Below the pieces are notes generated by a model. It saw only the letters and a program-made list of their open reading frames with translations, was not told the origin of the DNA and did not search any database. Positions 2,812 through 14,287 of a stretch of 45,960 nt of DNA are shown here, in pieces. The stretch comes from Pelomyxa schiedti (lineage: Eukaryota > Protista > Evosea). The translations under genes were made by a program, and so were the position numbers. Each line of letters begins with the position of its first letter. Positions within the stretch are counted from its first letter, which is position 1. The stretch covers positions 1-45,960 of the forward strand of contig JAHLWZ010000924.1 in assembly GCA_020536535.1 (NCBI GenBank), read 5' to 3'.

Positions 2812-4836
2812 TCAGAAGAGACCCGCTGATACACCAGACTCACAACCACATTCATCAGCACCACGCAGCATTTTAAATAGGCCATTTTCACCCCAGGTGT
2901 CTCCCATACTGTTTGGTATGAATGGAAAAGGAAAACGAGAAAAAGGTTATGGAAAAGGCAAACCTATTGACCATAAGCCAATAGGGCAGGTCATTTTCAA
3001 CTCCCCATCCAACTATCATCACAGCATGACCACCAACATCTTGTGAGGGAGAAAACAAAGAATTACTTACGACTGCTAAGGATTCTATTCACATACATGA
3101 GCCCCAGCGGTGCATGTAAACTCCGGAGCTGTAATAAAACCAATCCATGTAAAGGTTGAAGATTGAAATGACTGGCCCATTTTGCAGTATTTCTTCCTTA
3201 GTTCAGTGTTGGTACAAGAGAAGGACAAGGAATGAATACTTGAATGCTCTCTGGCGATGCATCAACAGCGTACGCAGAAGCAAATTGGTAAAATGGAATG
3301 ACAGAGCCATCCTCACAAGTTGCCTGGCAAGCTGTGGGGAATCCGGATTGTGTTGACGCACTTTTTTTGGTCATTTGATTCTCTGAATTAAGGAAAAGGA
3401 AAACCACATACTCATAGGGTAGGCAGGAGTCGAGTGTGTAACCTCTGTCAACCCCAAAGACTGTAGGGGAGTCAAATGCACCACCCCCACAGCCCCAGTC
3501 ATCTCAAAAATGGTAAGGAAAAAGTACATGCAATCCTTCACTTACAGTAGTCACATGAAACAAGGTGCTGCACAGAAAATCGTGAAGTAAAGCTGGCATT
3601 GCTGGAAATACACTTCCGCGCTTCAGCAACTTCCACTGCGGCGTGTGCCCAACAGTCGCCACAGGATGCCTTAAATCTTGTGAGTGGGGAAAAGATAATT
3701 ATGGAGAAACCTGGTTCCTTATTGACCAATTGCAGTCAGGCCACTCGTCTCTGGCATCAAAAGAGACAGGGATTACTTGGGAAGATTTATGTTGAACTTT
3801 GCCCTTCTGAGGTGCATGATATGGCAAAGGAAACATATTGAAAAGCTCCCCAGGAGACAGCCGAGAATAGTGCTGTGATAAGGGGGAGATAGAGGAACGC
3901 CATGGTGCTAGTTGCTCGGCAATAAGAGAAGGATACAGTGGTGTTCTCTGTGGAGTTGGCGGAAGAGGAAGGATTTTTTGTGCAAGTGGAGAGAGACGGT
4001 GATTGATCCACAAGTTAAGGAATTCTTTGGCATGTTCACTTTCAGCAGGCAAGCAATTACTTGGAGGAGTGAAATATGACGGTGCCACACCTGGTTGACT
4101 GTGAGTGTGCTTGGGATTGGTTGTTTGCGAAGCGGAATCACCATGAACGTAAGAATAACACTCTTCAATAAGATACTCTGAGGAATCAGTAAATGTCAAT
4201 GCCAAGTGGACAGGCGCATATGGGAACGAAATCATGCTGTAAAGGTCCGTGATAGTTGTATCAGTAGTTTCTCTGAAGATGTTGCACGGAACACCTGTAT
4301 ACAAACCGTATTATAAGTACATCTCCCAAAGACAACGTGGAGATATCGCATACCATTATAGACGATATCACCCACATACTTATAGGTGCTGAAGTTTGAT
4401 GGTGGGATTACAATGTCAGCAGAAACTTCCCAGCACAGTTCACTTCCGAAAAACCCAAAGATGAAATAGTATTTCCCCTGAAGAGAGTGGCATTGCCCAA
4501 AACATCACCTCGTTAACCCAAAACAAAAAAAAAAAAGGGGAAGAAACATGTGTTGAATCGGCGATGGTGCGCATCACATCCAGCCCTTTGTACTGGTCCA
4601 CAGTCATTACACCCTCATCCATATCAACAAACATATTCTCTTGTTCCCAATAATCCACGTGGTACCGGGGCTCTCTAGGGGAAGGGTAGTTGATGGTACA
4701 AACGTGGGTTCAGGTACTGCAATGCCGTTGTCAAGTGATACTGAGCTGGGAAAACCGGAGGGGAAGGCTCCGCCCCACATAAACCAACCGCGGCACACAC
4801 GCACACAACCAGAACACCAACCGAGTTCCGTTTCAT
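2812..4836 (-). CDS. Secreted papain-family (C1A) cathepsin B-like cysteine protease with a long N-terminal extension
   Basis: ATG 4836 starts the signal peptide [23 protein letters not shown] 43-nt intron restores the frame into [11 protein letters not shown]. Mature domain: [10 protein letters not shown]...[12 protein letters not shown] (catalytic Cys), [13 protein letters not shown] (His), [16 protein letters not shown] (Asn), [13 protein letters not shown], stop TGA 2814-2812. Confidence 0.9.
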
Positions 4837-4950
4837 GTTTTCGTAAAGAGAGAGAGAAAAAAAAGAACATCTTGTTACATGAGGTATTTAAAACCCAAAT
4901 CGGGAAGATGGGTTGTTGCACACAACCAAAGGGCTGTCCCGAAGAGTGAG

Positions 4951-7900
4951 TTAGCCACAGAGGACCCAGATTGAAAGGTTCTTGACTTTAAGCATGTGAC
5001 CTCCCCCTCCCCCAACCACACCATACAGTTGCAAGCTCCGAGACGCGGCTTGTTGGAATTTCCTTGTGTATGTGAATGTGGCCCATTCGTGATCAAGAAC
5101 TTTCGGGTGGGCCTGAACCATTGTTGTGACGTCGTTGTCGGAGACTAACTTGAGAAGTACACGGCTTTTCTGGTTGCCCCATCCTTGGTCCGTGGCACTG
5201 AAGCGCATAAAGATACTCAGAATGTGCAGTCCTGGCTTTGAAATGGGATCTGAGAGGGGCACAGGTGTGTCGGTCCTTGTATTGTTTTCCAAAGAAGAGA
5301 GATGTAGAACCTGTTGGAGGGTCTCGGCACTGTGTAGTGGATAATCAGCATTGCTGGAACCCTCAGAGTGTAGCCGAAGAATCACTTGGCTTCCGCTCTT
5401 TCCTTTGGCCTTGAATGTAACAAGTACTTTGCCCCCAAAAACATTCAAAGGCCTGGTTACAGATCCAATAATACCTTGGGTGCCTCCACCAAGGTGCACA
5501 GTGGGAACATGGAGAACAAGAGGGATCCAGCACACCCACGCGCAGAGGTCTGATACACACAACTTTCTGGACTTCGCGTCACAAATACCAAAGACCTGAA
5601 TATCACCAGCAAGTCTGGGAAGTGTCAGGCCAAAAGTGCCAGCTTTCGCTTCCCATTTTAACAAGGGGCTGTCACCAACGCGGAGGAGTACCAGACTGTC
5701 ACCCTCTGCGTGAAATTTCAGCAGTACACTAGAAGCAACACACCCTGGTTTGGAGAGAGAGTCAGTGAGTGGCACTGGTTTACCACTTGATGCATCCCCA
5801 ACACTTGGGTGTGTAATTCTGCTGGCAAGGTCCAGAGTTTCTGCTACCAGAGAAAAGTCTTCAACTACCAGTGGGTGGCCACCTCCGGCCCCAAGCAGCT
5901 GCATTGATTTGCCAAAACCGACATCCAGGAAAGCATTGTACACCTGCCATCCGTGTTCCGGAGTTCCACTGGATTCATTTAGCTTGGTGTCAAGGTGCGA
6001 CGATTTCCCAGCATCGCCAGACCAGATGCGCAAGTAAATGCTCCCTTGGCAGCTTGCTGAGGCTTGCTCTTTGATACGGAAGGAAGTGCTAATCCGACCA
6101 CCAAGTAGATGGCCAGGCTTGAAGACAGCTGGAATGCCAGGCGAGTCTCGCAGGTAGTATCCATTGTCAGGGAGCTAACAACAAAGTCTGGGTCCAACCT
6201 CTTGGTTTTGTTAATTCGTGTGGATTCATTAGGTAACACTAGTTCCGGAGCCTGTTTTGCAGGGGTTTCAACATGTTTGGCGGGAGCCTTGGGGGGGCAC
6301 TCTCTCAAAACAAGTAACTGTCGAGGAAGACAAGGAAGGACTTGATGGCAGAGAAGCCTTCATGTAGAATGTTGAAAAGAAGAGAAAACAAGGAATCTTA
6401 CATGAGATACTACAGCAGAAGGGTGCTCTCGCTCTCTCTTGAATATAGCAGTAAAGTTATTCCAGAGGTATTTGAAAAAATCGGCAAAGAACGCTGTGAT
6501 TTCCTGTACTAAGAACGGGAGAAATGACAATGTGAAGACCAAAGAAATGTACTAACAGTTGATCCGAAAGTCAAATTCAAAGTCTTGATGAAAGAGACTT
6601 CCAACTATGTGAGTAGAAAAAGTAGTGTCCTTGAGACTCGAGGAGTTCAGATTAAGATGGAAGCACAGCTTTCTAATTTGTAACCAGTTGCTAGGATTTA
6701 GGGAATCAAAGAAAGTTGCATATTGTTCCAGTCCGTCAAGTGCCCTCTGTGCACGCAGCAGATTTGCACGTGCCAGTAGAAGGTGGTCTGTAAGATCACC
6801 TGAAAGAAGAGCATCGAAAGCAACTATCGCTTGGTTTCGGCTCTTCTCTCTTTCTGCATACAAGACATCAAGAACTGACTTGGCCAGTTCAAGGTGTTCA
6901 CGTGAGAGTTGCACCAAGGTGAGAGCTTCATCATCAGTCACAGTACTGGACGACTGAGCAGCTCCTTGGTGCGGGCCTGCTGCCATTAATGAGGTAAGAG
7001 TTTGTATGGCCTTGGAGAATCCTTCACTTTGTGGCTTTTCAGTAACCAATTCAAAGGGATCCAAGTTCTGCACTAAACCAAGAAGCACATTGAAATTTAA
7101 GTCCCCACTTAAAAAGATTGTCGTCAATTCCTTGACGCCAGGAATGGAGAAGGCACCAGATACTGCCGCATCAATGAAATTAACAACAGAGTAATAAAGA
7201 GGGCCGCAGAGAGACTGAAGCTCTTGTATAAGTGCTGTGGTTTTGCAGGAATTGCAAACCAGACAGTTCAGTGCCTGGCTGAGCTTTGGTACGGAAGCAA
7301 GCTTCGCTAAGAGTGTGCCAACAAGGTTGGTATAACTCTTCGCTAGGGTGATAATTTTCTTAAGGTACTGTGAACTTGAAAGGCGCAGTAGAGTTTCTTT
7401 GAAACGCATCACAACTACCGCAAGGTGAGGTATATTCTTTCTCTGCAAAGAATGAAGAAGCTCTCCTGTTATTCCGAGGAAAGCCTTAACATGAACATCG
7501 TTGAGTACTTGTGAAAAATTATTGAGGGCAGAATCCTTCAACTTAACAACAAACTGGGACAGTATTAAATCAAGGTTCCGTAAGTCTAAGTGAAGGGTGG
7601 AGTAACAATTGCTAAGCTGTTTTCTAACCACATCTTGCAAATTCAATAATGTCTCTTTTGCTGCAGTCAGATTCTCTGTTGCGGACTTCACTGCAAAGTC
7701 ACGTTTCTGCTGAAGGTCATTCATGGCTTCCCTAAGTTTCTAACATAAAAGTTAGGGCAATCTTATACTGTCATTTTTTTTCGAATGCATACAGTATTTT
7801 CAGCTTCTAACGCATACTTTGCCTGTATTTCCTCTTGCTCAGCTTTATTAAGTGCCTCTTGTGCTCGGCTCCTGTACACTCGGTAGGGAATAACAACTGC

Positions 7901-10900
7901 CAGCCCAATGACCAAGCCACCTAGCCAAGCAATATTTGCTAATTTGAAATCGCTTTCTGCCTTTTCTAGGTCCCTTTTGGCAGCACTCACCGAATTTTGT
8001 GATTTCTTTTTTCAGCAATTGGTAAAGAAAATAAAACAATAAAAAAAGGACATTGGGAGCCTCACCTCAAGCTCGTATTGTAGGTTTTTAATGGCACTTT
8101 GTGCCTTCTCAGAAAGATCTTGTATGTTTGCATCCCACTTTGCTTTTATATTCTGCAGAGATTGAGTAGTCATATCAATCCGTTCTGTAACACCAAAGAT
8201 TTCCTGCGAAAGTGTCTCTTTCCCAAGCAATGCCTCTATATACTCACAGTTCTGCTCAAGGGTGTCAATTTCATCAGAACGCTGCTTAACTTGAAGCATA
8301 AATTCCTCTTCTGCTTTGATGAAGGTGTCCCGGCTGACAGCTATACTTGCATTAAACTTCTCCTGTGCTGACCTGAGCATCTCTTCAGCTTGACCAACAT
8401 TCATTAAAGCAGAATGAGCTGCATCTTTGGCAAAAGAGAGTGTCCCTTTCCTGATTTCAGATGTATCCTTAAAAGAGCCGTCAAGGCTAATTGCAATCCC
8501 TGAGGTATCTTTGCAACCTGAAAGATGTCCTGAAAGTTCCAATTCATAAGGTCCCACCTTCAGGGTGCCTTCAAGGTCTACCCCAGAAGCATCGAGCTTG
8601 AGAAATACACCCAAGCTGAAAATTTGGCCAATGTCAATGGCTCCATCAAGTAGAACCTCTGGCGCACTACCTGTCTTTACCGCAAGGCGGAACTGGGGAT
8701 TTGCCTTACATTTTCCATGGACTGAGACTGGGCCAGCTTGAAGTTGTCCACACTACCCTCCACACAACACCCAGTCTTTTGGAGTGTGGCAAGAACCTGT
8801 ACCTTCTTTGAGAGAACGGTTGCTTTGCAGCAGAAAGAGAAGCCAGGGTCAAACTTGCGTGTTCCTATTGTCCCACCAGAGGGCCCTGCGAGGCACAGTG
8901 ATAGCTCCTCAAAGTACAGGACATCGGGTGGAATCCTTACAAGGGCTTCAGGAAGACGAATGCCAGTGAGGCAGCTGATATCGGTAAAGAGATCTGCAAG
9001 AGAAAGGTTTTGTATACTGCCTTGCATAATAACTTCGTCAGGTATTGGGCTGAGCTTGAGTGCCATGCTCCCCTTGAAGTTTCCAAGTTCAAATTCCCCA
9101 GCAATTCCCACTACAGGAAGCTGAGGGGAAGCATATACTACCCCCAACTCAGCAGCAAGACGGCCGACAGAGAGGTTTTCCACACCAAATGGGTTTTTCC
9201 ATTTAGACTCCATCGTTAGAGACCCTTTGAATTCCTTCAAAGATACAGCTATCTGGGCAACGAACTTCAACTCTTGGTAGTTCACACCAGTTCCAACATT
9301 AGCATAAACATCAAAGTTTAGCCTAAGTTCAAACTTAGTGTCAATAACTACATGCAATGATTTGCAGCAAAGCCCACTACCAAGTTTTATGTTGAGATCG
9401 TTGGTTGGTGTGAGCTCAATGACACCAGCAGAAGCAGAATAGGACAATCTGAGGTTTCCCGCTCCATTTTCATTCCCAAGCTTACTGACAGCTGAGTCCA
9501 GGGCATCTATGCGAGAGAGATCCCCAAACATGGAGAGCCCTGGACCAACAAGGTTACAAGGGTAGCCGGTCGGTAGAAGATCGGTATCAGGGACAGGTGC
9601 TGATGCCCACGATGCTCCAAAGTGTTCACATTCCACAGGGAGTATAGGGCACAGCTTCCTTAGTGAGAAGTGTTGCACATCTGCACACACAACATAGGCT
9701 GGCTTCCCACCTGAAACAAAGCGGGCAGCAGTAACATCAAATGTAATTCCATAAAGTTCCGCCGTGCCAGTGATCATACATTGGACGGGTTTACTAGTAT
9801 GGACAGAGAGAACCAAATGAGCCGCTTTTATAACCACTGCCCCATCACCGATGCTGAAATCCCCCTTAAAGCTGCAATCTAAGTCCAGGCCTTCAGGTGT
9901 TAACTTCACAAAGCCTTCGACGATATACTTTGTGTCATACACACAGACAACCCTCAAGCTTGCTCCCTTCTTCACAGGAATACCTCTGCCAATGTTTCCA
10001 TCAGCTGAAGATAGGCTTACGGTGATATCTTTAAATTGCAAGAGTTCTCCATGTGAGGAAGAGTTGGGAAGGTAGGTTTGTTTGAACAGGGCACGGAACA
10101 TGGCTATCACATCTGCCCAAGTGAAGTCTTGCACTGAGGCGACGACCCCTGATATGGAGGAGCTGAGAGTTCCATCAAGCCGCAAGTGGAATTGATTGGC
10201 TTCAGCTCCATGTTCGAAACTTACTGTCGCCCACAGTGAAAGGGTGGCAGTTTTCCAGCCCCCCTCTTGCACTGAGAAGTTTATTCCTGTTGATCCCAGT
10301 GAAAGTCCTGGTATCCCCAGTGCATTGATCCATCTGTCAATTACTGCATTGACTGTGGTACATCTACTGGAGAAGTCAAATGATAAGTAGGCACGCAGCT
10401 TGAGCTCCAAGTCGCCACTAAAATTGATTCTCATTGCTCCACGCAGTTGAATTCCCCAGCTTGTGCCACTGAAGCCAGTTGTCATGTGGTAACAGGGAAT
10501 CAGATAGACATCAACTGCAATCTGGTCCAGTGCCAAACTGAAGTTGGCCCTTGAAACTAGCACTGTACTCTCGCTTGTTCGAGCAGTAAGTACAAGGTAA
10601 TCTAACCTTGATTCCCCTTTGCAAGGGAAGCGGGCTTCGAAGCGCAGCTGTGACCTCAATTCGACTCCAGGTACAAGGGCCATAATGGAGGCTACTGTCG
10701 AACTATCAAGAGTACTTCCAAGGTTAACCACAAACTCGTCACCGACTTGTACAAATGCCAACTTGGATACAACGCTGGACATGAGTATTCCTATCACAGA
10801 GTCTGTAAGACCACTTTTTGCAATGTGGTTAACAACATCTATGTAATTAATGGTTTCAGGTGCAGGACTGTTGTCTGCTACCGAGCTGGGATGAGGCGAG

Positions 10901-12530
10901 CCCCCACGAAGTCCAGTACTTTTTGGTCTTGCCGTTACTCCAAGTTCCTCCAGAGTAAGCCGAGCTATAGTCTCCTTAAGTAGCCCAAGCCCAGCAGAAG
11001 GCTTGTTGCACAACCATAGGTCATAGGTAAATGAACTATTCCCAATCAGAAAGCATAGACTAGAGTGAGAAACACACCCAGAAAAAAAATTGATATCCAT
11101 CTTTCCAAACTCTCCACTCGCAGGTAAGCTTACGGGAAAATTGGTCACACTTAAATCTGGGGTCGTTGAAGATTGGGTCTGCTTTGGTAGAAAAATGTAC
11201 ATCACAACCCTTATAGATGTTGTAAGTGCGAGATGGTGAAGAAACCTCACCTTCTTGTTAAAGAACGAAGAAAGAGCACCCTCATGGACCATCATGAGGG
11301 AATTGGCATGAGCTGTTCCAAGAACTAAGTTGCCTGCGGACTGTGATCCACCCTGTGAGAATGCCTGCCTGTGAAGCCAATCCCAAGTAACCTCATCGTT
11401 GCTATCAAGGAGATCAACAAATTGATCTACTTGCTGAGCCTGTTCTTAGGTGAGCTCCAAAAAATCTCTTTCATTACAGACCTTATATAAAAGCCTAGCA
11501 GTCTGTGTTGCACTGCCATTTCCTCTGATTCCGAATGTGTTCAGCAACCAATCCTTCATGACCTGGTTCTGTGTTGGAGAACGTTTTCCAGATTGCCTCT
11601 TAAGTAAAACAAAAGGTGTTGCTTTTCCTGAGGGTCTTGAATGGGAATTAGAGCAACAGTCTCCATAAGTCCGACATACGAGGGTACATCCGGAGGTACA
11701 TGCATCAAACTATACGCGGAGAGTTCAGGGTTCCCATTAAAGATCTGGAAGCGTGACAGTCCATTGGAAGACACTGAAGGGCATCCAGTCTTGTGAGAAT
11801 CCCAGAATTTCCTTGCCGCTGACTCGGGGCTAAGTTGTGCAATAAAGTTCTCGGTTCCTGAAGTTCGTTAACAATGGCCACAAACTAGGGGGAGCTTTCA
11901 AACCTGTGGAAGGGCACCACAGTACCAGCTTATTAAACCGGCCAAATGGGTTTATAGCGGAGTATTGTCTGTCAACAGGATCCCGCGGATGAAATACCGA
12001 ATATAGCCGGATGAAAAAAATTGGCTGATACTCCGGACTCTTTCTGAGCCACGCTGTGAGGAGTGTCTTGAGGTCGGTGGTTGCATTTTCTGCATGTCCG
12101 ACTTTGGTTACTTCTACTTCAATGTAAGGGAGGGCATTAATTTCTCGTGTCGCGGCCCTGTCACTCATTTCCAATGGAGGTGGTGGTCCCTGCGAGTAAA
12201 GGGGTGGAATTCCAGCAGCACGTCGTTTAGCCGCGGCTGCAGACTCGGCAATGGCTTCCAAAGTTTTCAGTGTCCCACTGAGCTCATCGGTAGAGAGCTT
12301 GATGCGCACAGGAAACTTTCCTGGGTGGGGCTTGGGTTCCCAAGGTACACCGTCATCGTTGTATTCCTTCGGCTGTATTGCTCAACCAACAACAAAAAAG
12401 GAAAAGAAAACAAAGTTCAAACCTGCTTTCCCTTCACGCATGTGGCCTCTGTGAAGCAGTCACAGAAAGTAATTATTACATTTTCTGCCTCTGGCTCTGT
12501 ATCTTGGCCCTCCTCCGCAACCGTGTCCAT
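4951..12530 (-). CDS. Giant multi-domain protein of unknown function (>2000 aa): HNH/His-Me-like motif, long beta-rich region, coiled-coil/helical region, repeated C-terminal modules
   Basis: ORFs 11830-12309, 11556-11774, 8677-11295, 8012-8614, 7763-7990, 6552-7724, 6360-6542, 5979-6308 and 4951-6033 are all on the minus strand. Most of the junctions I traced can be joined by short GT-AG introns (e.g. ACAG|gtttga..cttcag|GA, AAG|gtctgt..aacag|GCT, GAG|gtgagg..aaag|AAA, ACT|gtatgc..ttag|AAA). Probable ATG 12530 (MDTVAEEGQDTEPEAEN|gt). One junction near 8730 needs a frameshift or a 29-nt intron. Confidence 0.75.
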
Positions 12531-12809: not shown

Positions 12810-14287
12810 CTACAAGAAGTACTCAGGTGGTGACCGTTTTACCGGGATTGAATTGGAATCTGGTGGTGCTGCCTCAAACGTTTTGAAATGCTTGGTCATA
12901 TTGTCATCTACCTCAAGTATAGCGGCAACATTCCCACACCTTAAAAGAAGGTAAAGCAGAATCGAAAGGTAAGGCAGCCAAACCTATAGCAATAATTTGG
13001 AGCAGACCACACAGTCACAAGGGATTCATTGAACATCCACTTATAACCCTCCATTACAAGTTGGTGAGCACGGCAAATCAATTCAAGCTTGTTGGCAGTA
13101 TTAAACTGGGGAAATGTTAAAATGAGTCAAGGAACGATATTAGCAGGATGCCTGATGCACGATATCGGCCCCGAACAGGTATCCTGCGCCACGAGGGCTC
13201 ATACTCCAGCCTTCAATTTCTGGAAGAATGTTAGTCTGGTCATTACTCAGATCGAGATGAGGGTACCTTCAGGATCAGACCACAATAGGTCACACATGGA
13301 ACCATCATGGGGAACTTCCTGCTTTCTATCCATTGTCCTTATCTACTAGTGTTAGTGCCTGGTACAAAGGTGACGGAAAACAACCTGGTCAAGTGTGTGA
13401 ATTGAAGGAGACAAGCCACCGTGAACACAGAAAATTCTGTTGTCAATAACCGCACTCAAACTGTTTCCTGTTAAATCTGAAAGGGGGGAAATTCGACATG
13501 TACCTTAAATAATCAAAAATTTCAGTGCAGTACCTCCACACATTGACACTTCCGAACTTTCTTATGCACTCATCGTAAAAACCATAGACCTTGAAGGGTG
13601 TGTTCACATGTGCAACTCCAGGGTACATGGGGAAGTTACCTGTGTTATTTGACGGCTTTCATGGTTTCCGCGTATCAATGTGATTCGGTCAGGGTAGCGC
13701 ACCTGGTTGACAAACACGTTAAGGGGATTATTCACCCACCGCATTGATGTTGTGCAAAGTGCTGCAACCATTTGCTTGCATATTACAGCTCCCCGTTTTT
13801 TAGTGCAAGCTTATGTGGAATGTGTGTTGAATGTGAGTCTGACAGTAGATTCGACAACCTTAAGTGCTATCAGTAGGAGGAAAGTTTCCACACTGTTGAA
13901 TCCTCTATCAACAAAGTCCCCAAGGAACAAGTAATTTGTACCAGGACATTCACCACCAACTTTGAATAATTCTTTAAGATCAGAAAATTGTCCATGAATA
14001 TCTCCACAAATCTGTCCAGAGCAAATTCATGTTAAAAGGTGGGTTGCTTTTTCTTAGTATTGGCAATACTAGGCATGTTAAGATGCACAGAAAAATATTA
14101 AGAAATGCAACTGCACGTTAAAAGAGGGGAGGATTACAGTCACGGGCAAATCTACACGTTGGACATTCGCTTCCTCAACCAAAATTTCTCTCGCTTTTGT
14201 ACACAACGCTTTCACCTCAGACTCTTTTATCAACTCACAACGCCGCAACTTTTCAATATGCCTATCAAGGTCAGATGTCGATGTCAT
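12810..14287 (-). CDS. PPP4C: Serine/threonine protein phosphatase PP4 catalytic subunit (PP2A family)
   Basis: [46 protein letters not shown] (PP4-type N-terminus). Spliced exons give [26 protein letters not shown] and [22 protein letters not shown]-terminus ...PPEYFL, stop TAG 12812-12810. Confidence 0.92.

Follow-up and report, generated by a model that had tools for sequence, protein, structure and literature searches.

A giant Pelomyxa schiedti protein, Pelo_14230, with a predicted nuclease-like domain and beta-sheet core, and its apparently undescribed family in bacteria and fungi

In this study, the structure, relatives and possible function of Pelo_14230, a gene of Pelomyxa schiedti, were investigated using sequence searches, predicted structures and structural comparisons. 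The gene lies on the minus strand at positions 4951–12530 of contig JAHLWZ010000924.1 (assembly GCA_020536535.1), of which a stretch of 45,960 nucleotides (hereafter the window) was analysed. According to the title of the genome paper, the genome was reportedly obtained from amplified single cells. Pelo_14230 is a genuine intron-containing gene of P. schiedti, and its predicted product appears to belong to a family of giant proteins that share a large beta-sheet core and that carry, in some members, a nuclease-like domain. A first-pass annotation, made from the letters of the DNA, had described a modular giant protein in which an enzyme, a beta-rich middle, a hydrophobic element and repeated end modules follow one another, and the parts were found in the order described.

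Locus, gene model and transcripts

Pelo_14230 was identified by an exact cluster look-up and by matching the annotated protein to three frames of the minus strand. The product is an exact match in the protein collection to KAH3744362.1, a hypothetical protein of 2247 amino acids (aa). When the NCBI protein was mapped back onto the DNA, 14 annotated exons were obtained, with the stop codon at 4951–4953. Four long open frames make up most of the coding sequence (11445–8680, 8752–8015, 7739–6555 and 6174–4954, minus strand). The first of them has 922 codons and is by far the longest in the window, in agreement with the long central exons remarked on in the first-pass annotation. Upstream and on the same strand, a PPP-family Ser/Thr phosphatase gene with a SAPNYCYR-type motif has its 3′ end at 12810–13200. 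This gene ends about 280 bases before the start of Pelo_14230, which makes a start at 12530 plausible. At the other end of the locus, the C-terminal open frame lacks a plausible independent start and is therefore probably joined to the upstream exons as annotated.

The reading frame of Pelo_14230 is broken at 8734–8746 (minus strand), where two frames overlap and both align serially to a single open frame of a paralog, Pelo_9192. The annotation spans this break by a 98-nucleotide GT..AG 'intron' (8802–8705), which deletes about 33 conserved residues. A second questionable annotated intron, at about 9558–9507, is in frame and excises 18 residues that are kept in the paralog; by this comparison, it is probably a prediction error. 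The same letters are present at the frame break in an independent contig of the DNA run X3, so that the break is either genuine or goes back to an error that is also present in the source data. It was left unrepaired, and the flanking pieces were searched and folded separately.

Contigs of RNA libraries were compared over positions 4800–10799 of the window. Their coverage, which came from two single-cell libraries, was confined to 4868–6895, and no splice joint was present in them over the compared range. A 906-base contig (5771–6676) follows the genomic sequence without interruption across three annotated introns (6557–6510, 6401–6358 and 6318–6175); its source is either RNA that had not been spliced or DNA that entered the library. 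The 3′-only coverage of Pelo_14230 nevertheless looks like that of cDNA. The proposal of one spliced gene of more than 2000 aa therefore stands in part: NCBI holds a single minus-strand gene with 14 exons and a product of 2247 aa, but the RNA contigs are unspliced and the frame is broken at one point.

These results bear on the possibility that Pelo_14230 is a decaying copy, in which the frame break would be real, the annotated intron across it an artefact, and the full-length protein no longer made. Such decay would account for a change of frame inside sequence that aligns ungapped to the paralog, for the agreement of the independent DNA-run contig with the window and for the unspliced RNA-library contigs. 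However, in every other exon the open frame is still long and conserved residues are retained, those of the nuclease motif described below among them, and a one-base error is possible given an amplified single-cell genome. Moreover, RNA contigs over the 3′ 2 kb in two libraries are what would be expected of 3′-biased cDNA from a transcribed gene. Decay of the gene is considered rather improbable.

Predicted domains of Pelo_14230

The first-pass annotation had placed a His-Me/HNH-like motif in the N-terminal region, and this proposal was upheld. The active-site-like motif lies at 11281–11379 on the minus strand and is translated as W324-L-H326, N340-L-V-L-G-T, N349, M352 and E356. Residues 304–370 of Pelo_14230 match 28 long relatives of bacterial and fungal origin, across which the consensus is EWLH, about 19 residues, and then Q...NLvfGT.eaN..M...E. 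The H, both N, the M and the E of this consensus are invariant or at least 90% conserved in the 28 homologs, and all are retained in Pelo_14230. Among them, N349 (at least 90% conserved) and E356 (invariant) correspond to a metal-binding-type Asn on a helix and an acidic residue. Residues 236–440 were modelled by AlphaFold2 (AF2) with the 28 homologs, and the predicted local distance difference test (pLDDT) was 63.5 overall and about 80 in the motif part. In the model, a strand at 322–326 that ends in W-L-H326 is followed by a strand at 341–345 (NLVLG) and by a 20-residue helix at 346–365. Strand 1 thereby ends with His326, Asn340 falls at strand 2, and the helix carries Asn349 and Glu356, an arrangement that is the beta-beta-alpha-metal topology.

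Three mutually independent structure searches returned DNA/RNA non-specific His-Me nucleases for this region, toxin domains among them, in line with the catalytic head that had been proposed. The top matches of Foldseek against PDB were Sda1, EsaD, NucA, Anabaena NucA and EndA (E 0.5–4). In a VIA search of 48,161 chains, 26 reached Z of at least 2, and the top 10 (Z 4.9–3.2) were all DNA/RNA non-specific nucleases: Sda1 twice (Z 4.9 and 4.7), S. agalactiae NucA, EndA, the extracellular nuclease 2xh3, EXOG, Anabaena NucA, Serratia nuclease, EsaD and EndoG. Seven of the ten rows of an ESM Atlas shape search were Endonuclea_NS_2 clusters, including LXG/type VII secretion system (T7SS) and CdiA-type toxins, and an eighth was EssD-like. 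The template-modelling (TM) scores of these Atlas matches were 0.55–0.67 by row (0.67 on short single-domain clusters), with a root-mean-square deviation (rmsd) of 3.0–3.4. The His-to-Asn spacing of 23 also equals that between the general base His188 and the metal ligand Asn211 of Sda1. A His-Me finger fold, with toxin-type non-specific nucleases as its nearest structural relatives, is supported by the model for the N-terminal domain. This Endonuclea_NS_2-like domain (residues ~253–400, 10993–11634 on the minus strand, cut by annotated introns) is probably a divergent, and presumably active, member of the His-Me non-specific endonuclease group.

The Endonuclea_NS_2 and Endonuclease_NS domains of Sda1, NucA, EndA and EndoG, and of the EsaD/EssD-LXG, CdiA, Rhs and YxiD toxin heads, share the beta-beta-alpha topology with the Pelo_14230 domain. 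The His at the end of strand 1, the Asn at the helix start 23 residues later and the acidic residue one or two turns further on are common to both. Endonuclease_NS-type His-Me nucleases form group 5 of Jablonska et al. 2017 (PMC5714182), and DRGH is characteristic of EndA, Spd1/Sda1 and NucA, which are well-studied members of the non-specific endonuclease group (PMC5714182). In contrast, the Pelo_14230 domain has EWLH, not DRGH, and gives no match to the profiles PF01223 and PF13930. It is also located near the N-terminus of a giant protein, whereas the known nucleases are small secreted enzymes or C-terminal toxin tips. Unlike the Endonuclea_NS_2 toxin heads, the Pelo_14230 family was not seen with an inhibitor or immunity partner.

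The antiparallel beta-sheet core occupies an uninterrupted frame of 708 aa at 8731–10854 (minus strand). Its last strands lie at 8432–8746 in the frame used after the break, where 38% identity to residues 714–954 of the paralog was observed. The core is about 700 residues long as folded and about 800 when the strands past the break are included. The 708-aa piece was folded by AF2 with 48 relatives, and the model contains about 45 long antiparallel strands and few short helices (pLDDT 84.6), which agrees with the earlier description of a beta-rich centre of about 750 aa with recurring W..[AP][LF]G motifs. Two copies of the motif are present in the core (model residues 175 and 552), where shuffling predicts 0.013, and there is weak in-register similarity (z 2.4) between the blocks around them. 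The second of the two, W.NPFG, is the most conserved motif of the family and heads its most conserved 230 residues, over which the mean column identity among bacterial members is 58%. Judged from the alignment, such conservation appears unusually high for a mere lipid groove.

PDB searches with the core returned generic beta meanders, including TonB receptors, LptD and porins (rmsd 12–40 Å), and the beta-belt of ApoB100 was matched with a Foldseek probability of 0.96 but a TM score of 0.20. No large clostridial, Tc or RHS toxin fold appeared in the top 50 rows of either Foldseek or VIA. The best global matches, obtained in the Atlas, were predicted clusters of YdbH, TamB, AsmA and YhdP (TM 0.33–0.42), with alignments of 383–436 residues across nearly the whole core model at TM 0.35–0.42. 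A groove-like rod is therefore the best available description of the core, although the AsmA-like match is weak and, as a comparison of predicted models, lies below the level that shows a common fold.

These matches raise the possibility that Pelo_14230 is a bridge-like or groove-forming protein of an unrecognised AsmA-like or repeating-beta-groove family, which handles lipids or tethers membranes. The sheet would then form a hydrophobic groove anchored at one end by the coil and the hydrophobic segment that follow it, the end modules would be adaptors, and the nuclease-like domain an accessory or non-catalytic part. Besides the extent of the global matches and the ApoB100 hit, the architecture is compatible with this explanation. 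In the AsmA-like proteins (YdbH, TamB, YhdP and AsmA) and in VPS13, ATG2 and BLTP1-3, hundreds of residues form an antiparallel meander with occasional short helices, as in the Pelo_14230 core. In ApoB100, ApoA-I-like helices come after a long amphipathic beta sheet, as in the Pelo_14230 family, and most members of the family consist of the core alone, without a nuclease. However, the TM scores remain below 0.5, and no sequence match to AsmA, TamB, YhdP, Chorein_N, VPS13 or ATG2 was found in the window protein or in nine relatives using Pfam and NCBIfam. An N-terminal membrane anchor or signal of the AsmA/chorein kind is absent from Pelo_14230 and from most bacterial members. The likeness to ApoB100 is confined to local 3Di and compositional similarity, and Pelo_14230 has no lipovitellin-type N-terminal domain. 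Compared with the AsmA-like and bridge-like proteins, the family is far more conserved in sequence, as the 230 most conserved residues illustrate, and it is fused to a nuclease-like domain in which catalytic-type residues are conserved. It also occurs in Bacillota, monoderm bacteria that offer no second membrane for a bridge to reach. The repeating-beta-groove (RBG) alternative named in the first-pass annotation thus gains the best global match of the core, but the hallmarks of AsmA and RBG proteins are missing, and a protein devoted to lipids or tethering is regarded as unlikely.

An amphipathic coiled-coil stretch follows the core at 7793–8431 (minus strand), in two exons (8431–8066 and 8005–7793). 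Searches with the window protein gave only weak matches to coiled-coil families in this stretch, and ApoA-I-type helices were matched there by a family profile. A hydrophobic segment of about 20 residues with basic flanks is located at 7877–7948; it is present in both Pelomyxa paralogs and in almost no bacterial relative. The coiled coil and one hydrophobic segment were thus found as had been described, but the hairpin was not: the element has single-span length in Pelo_14230, and hairpin length occurs at the same place only in the paralog. Exon 11 (6558–7739, minus strand; residues 1398–1791), a block of about 390 residues, is kept in the paralog and shows, at its end, a weak similarity to the C-terminal ends of relatives in bacteria. 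From its sequence, this 'helical block' is read as helical. Two short annotated exons (6319–6509, minus strand), the first of which is kept in the paralog, connect the block to the C-terminal modules.

The C-terminal modules, at 4954–6174 (minus strand), are present in at least three copies and carry the signature PVPL.D..SKPG near the start and GGGGH.L.V near the end. That they repeat, as had been claimed, was confirmed by Smith-Waterman comparison with shuffles (z 7.5–8.8; 0 of 300 shuffles as high), and a blastp self-comparison of the C-terminus detected no repeats. The C-terminal ~390 residues of Pelo_14230 are common to no other family member. One other Pelomyxa gene, Pelo_10848 (290 aa; C804:15344–16048), contains two copies of the same module (KDQGWGN ... 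VGGGGGH.L.V), and no relatives of the module outside Pelomyxa were found in a length-limited word search. Pelo_10848 is adjoined by a serine-rich low-complexity open frame of 239 codons on the minus strand. A language model suggested that the end modules may be CBM_4_9-like sandwiches, which is only a lead.

At the opposite end of the protein, the N-terminal ~300 residues (exons 1–4, 11482–12530, minus strand) have an acidic start and no recognisable domain, and no second copy of this region was found in the Pelomyxa genome. Pelo_14230 has no signal peptide or hydrophobic N-terminus, as the first-pass annotation had also stated, and no hydrophobic stretch is present before residue 465.

Family members, gene neighbourhoods and origin

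A profile of the two Pelomyxa cores was scored against 1.84 billion representative proteins, and 396 proteins were matched at E≤1e-3 and 26 at E≤1e-30. The nearest non-self match was WP_185120243 of Cohnella thailandensis (3e-53). The named members comprise three bacterial and 14 fungal proteins (Basidiomycota and Ascomycota), all of which are 'hypothetical'. A genome scan added 25 further bacterial loci from Bacteroidota, Pseudomonadota, Spirochaetota and Bacillota and from two Candidatus Dependentiae. Homologs outside Pelomyxa, a search for which the first-pass annotation had suggested, are thus present in both bacteria and fungi. A typical bacterial member has 1200–1320 aa and combines the beta core with a stretch of amphipathic helices and about 290 aa of C-terminal sequence, and longer members (1500–2500 aa) carry N-terminal extensions. 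Across the family, the overlap with Pelo_14230 is limited to the core and a stretch of about 70 residues in the N-terminal region; the coil and the helical block are common mainly to the paralog. The beta core is the conserved heart of the family.

The paralog count in the Pelomyxa genome, a point likewise raised earlier, is one. This gene, Pelo_9192 (1519 aa as annotated; C721:53236–58001), is 47% identical to Pelo_14230 over the core and is colinear with it from 10836 down to ~6426. Its core is contained in one open frame of 963 codons, with fewer introns than in Pelo_14230, and the nuclease domain and C-terminal modules were not detected in it. Fungal genomes hold several copies of the family. 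Two members of Calocera cornea, KZT52898 and KZT52893, belong to the same sequence cluster and lie on the same 89-kb contig, which suggests local duplication in fungi.

Sequence searches of Pfam, NCBIfam, PADLOC and PDB with every piece of the protein and at least nine relatives assigned no family and gave only coiled-coil noise (LmuB, JetC, Rad50, SMC, Filament, HrpB7 and ApoLp-III). Matches to ThrE, EAD6, FapA, DUF6987, DUF6779 and DUF7587 were below the cut-offs, did not recur in relatives and were disregarded, and DUF6603, a feature lead from the Atlas, was confirmed by Pfam on no member. A word-index search with an 872-aa open frame found no relatives because these are too distant to share words. 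On these comparisons, Pelo_14230 and its relatives constitute what appears to be an undescribed and unnamed family of giant proteins across bacteria, fungi and Pelomyxa.

The bacterial members are stand-alone genes. Defence-like genes were observed in 4 of 18 bacterial neighbourhoods (restriction-modification (RM)/Abi, AbiE/TIR, Schlafen/UvrD/Fic and a helicase-nuclease), and the others were housekeeping. Signal peptides are absent in most bacterial members and present in two Dependentiae and one Spirochaetales member. Dependentiae are intracellular associates of amoebae, and the two Dependentiae members branch apart from the Pelomyxa genes.

The makeup of the family bears directly on the AB-type or polymorphic toxin that the first-pass annotation had inferred. 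Such a protein would be secreted, its C-terminal modules would bind a receptor, and the beta-rich and hydrophobic parts would then carry the nuclease across the target membrane. The family resembles polymorphic and large AB toxins in its modular giant proteins, toxin-type nuclease and patchy phyletic spread. The order of enzyme, beta-rich and hydrophobic middle, and binding-like repeats, together with the signal peptides of the three bacterial members, also fits a secreted toxin. However, signal peptides are missing from the amoeba protein and from most of the bacterial members, and LXG, PAAR, RHS, FHA, MIX and other trafficking or translocation domains were not found by Pfam and NCBIfam in the window protein and its relatives. 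In the bacterial neighbourhoods examined, neither immunity nor secretion genes accompany the family, and the structure searches with the core matched no known translocation or delivery domain. In addition, the head stands at the N-terminus and may be missing, whereas the tips of polymorphic toxins are C-terminal and swapped. The N-terminal domain is either present or absent among homologs and is not replaced by other known toxins, which answers in the negative the question of swapping that the first-pass annotation had posed. The proposed delivery was therefore not sustained, and a secreted toxin of this kind is judged quite improbable.

In the phylogeny, the two Pelomyxa genes form a long branch whose placement with the fungal clade is weakly supported (SH-aLRT 84 and 81). 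In an approximately unbiased (AU) test on a 34-row set, holding Pelomyxa with the bacterial clade cost 0.68 log-likelihood units (p-AU 0.485), and the fungal and bacterial placements thus fit equally well. No other amoebozoan matches were among the best 150. Given this result, the patchy spread of the family and the long exons, lateral acquisition of the Pelomyxa copies is plausible from the sequence data.

Possible function and significance

Pelo_14230 is tentatively interpreted as a nuclease effector that associates with membranes and belongs to a conflict-type family not described before, an account towards which we lean while holding it at somewhat short of an even chance. The protein would act as a nuclease in biological conflict, either against ingested or resident bacteria or viruses, or as a means of self-destruction. 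The beta sheet, the amphipathic helices and the hydrophobic segment would hold the protein on a membrane or act on one, and ligand binding would fall to the end modules. Triggering or positioning of the protein would then allow the nuclease to cause damage. In favour of this interpretation are the conservation of the nuclease motif in 28 homologs, the agreement of the three structure searches and the His-to-Asn spacing shared with Sda1. The confidently predicted beta meander, with its likeness to AsmA-like grooves and the ApoB beta-belt, the ApoA-I-type helices after it and the hydrophobic segment in the coil would fit a protein that engages membranes. The RM/Abi/TIR, Schlafen/UvrD/Fic or helicase-nuclease genes next to some bacterial members and the several copies in fungal genomes are also counted in its favour.

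Several observations weigh against this interpretation. The structural scores of the nuclease-like domain are all modest (Z<5 and Foldseek E>0.4), and EWLH replaces DRGH before the catalytic-type His. Residues 1–420 gave no match in Pfam even at E≤10 and none in NCBIfam, and the profile of the 28 homologs matched no PDB chain at E≤10. The nuclease domain was found in 28 of 117 tree rows, with at least 16 gains or losses on the core tree, a number that is inflated by truncated gene models. Since most members lack the nuclease, an independent function must reside in the core. Across the 18 bacterial neighbourhoods, neither a conserved neighbour nor an immunity gene was found, and the 4 of 18 with defence-like genes are not clearly above chance as an enrichment in defence islands, 11 genome neighbourhoods being housekeeping. 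Finally, the frame shift at 8734–8746, set against ungapped amino-acid homology to Pelo_9192, and the absence of spliced-transcript support indicate that Pelo_14230 may not yield the full protein.

A wider proposal, which is doubtful but deserves some weight, is that the family represents a hitherto unrecognised class of groove- or belt-forming beta-sheet proteins. It would be a further bridge-like or AsmA-like lineage, distributed in monoderm and diderm bacteria, Dikarya and an amoeba, in which many members are armed with a toxin-type His-Me nuclease. Such proteins would constitute a new membrane-engaging nuclease machine without a described counterpart, which would either serve as an effector in immunity or suicide or move a nuclease through a membrane.

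The analysis exposes errors in the public gene model of Pelo_14230. If the domain assignments are true, it also provides the first description of a widespread unnamed family (396 representatives, with every named one 'hypothetical') in which a nuclease of toxin type is joined to a giant amphipathic beta sheet. For the field of biological conflict and immunity, the family would offer a new candidate effector in fungi and an amoeba, and for the field of bridge-like lipid transfer, it may be an additional lineage outside the diderm envelope. For the biology of Pelomyxa, Pelo_14230 would be a candidate factor at the interface with prey or resident prokaryotes.

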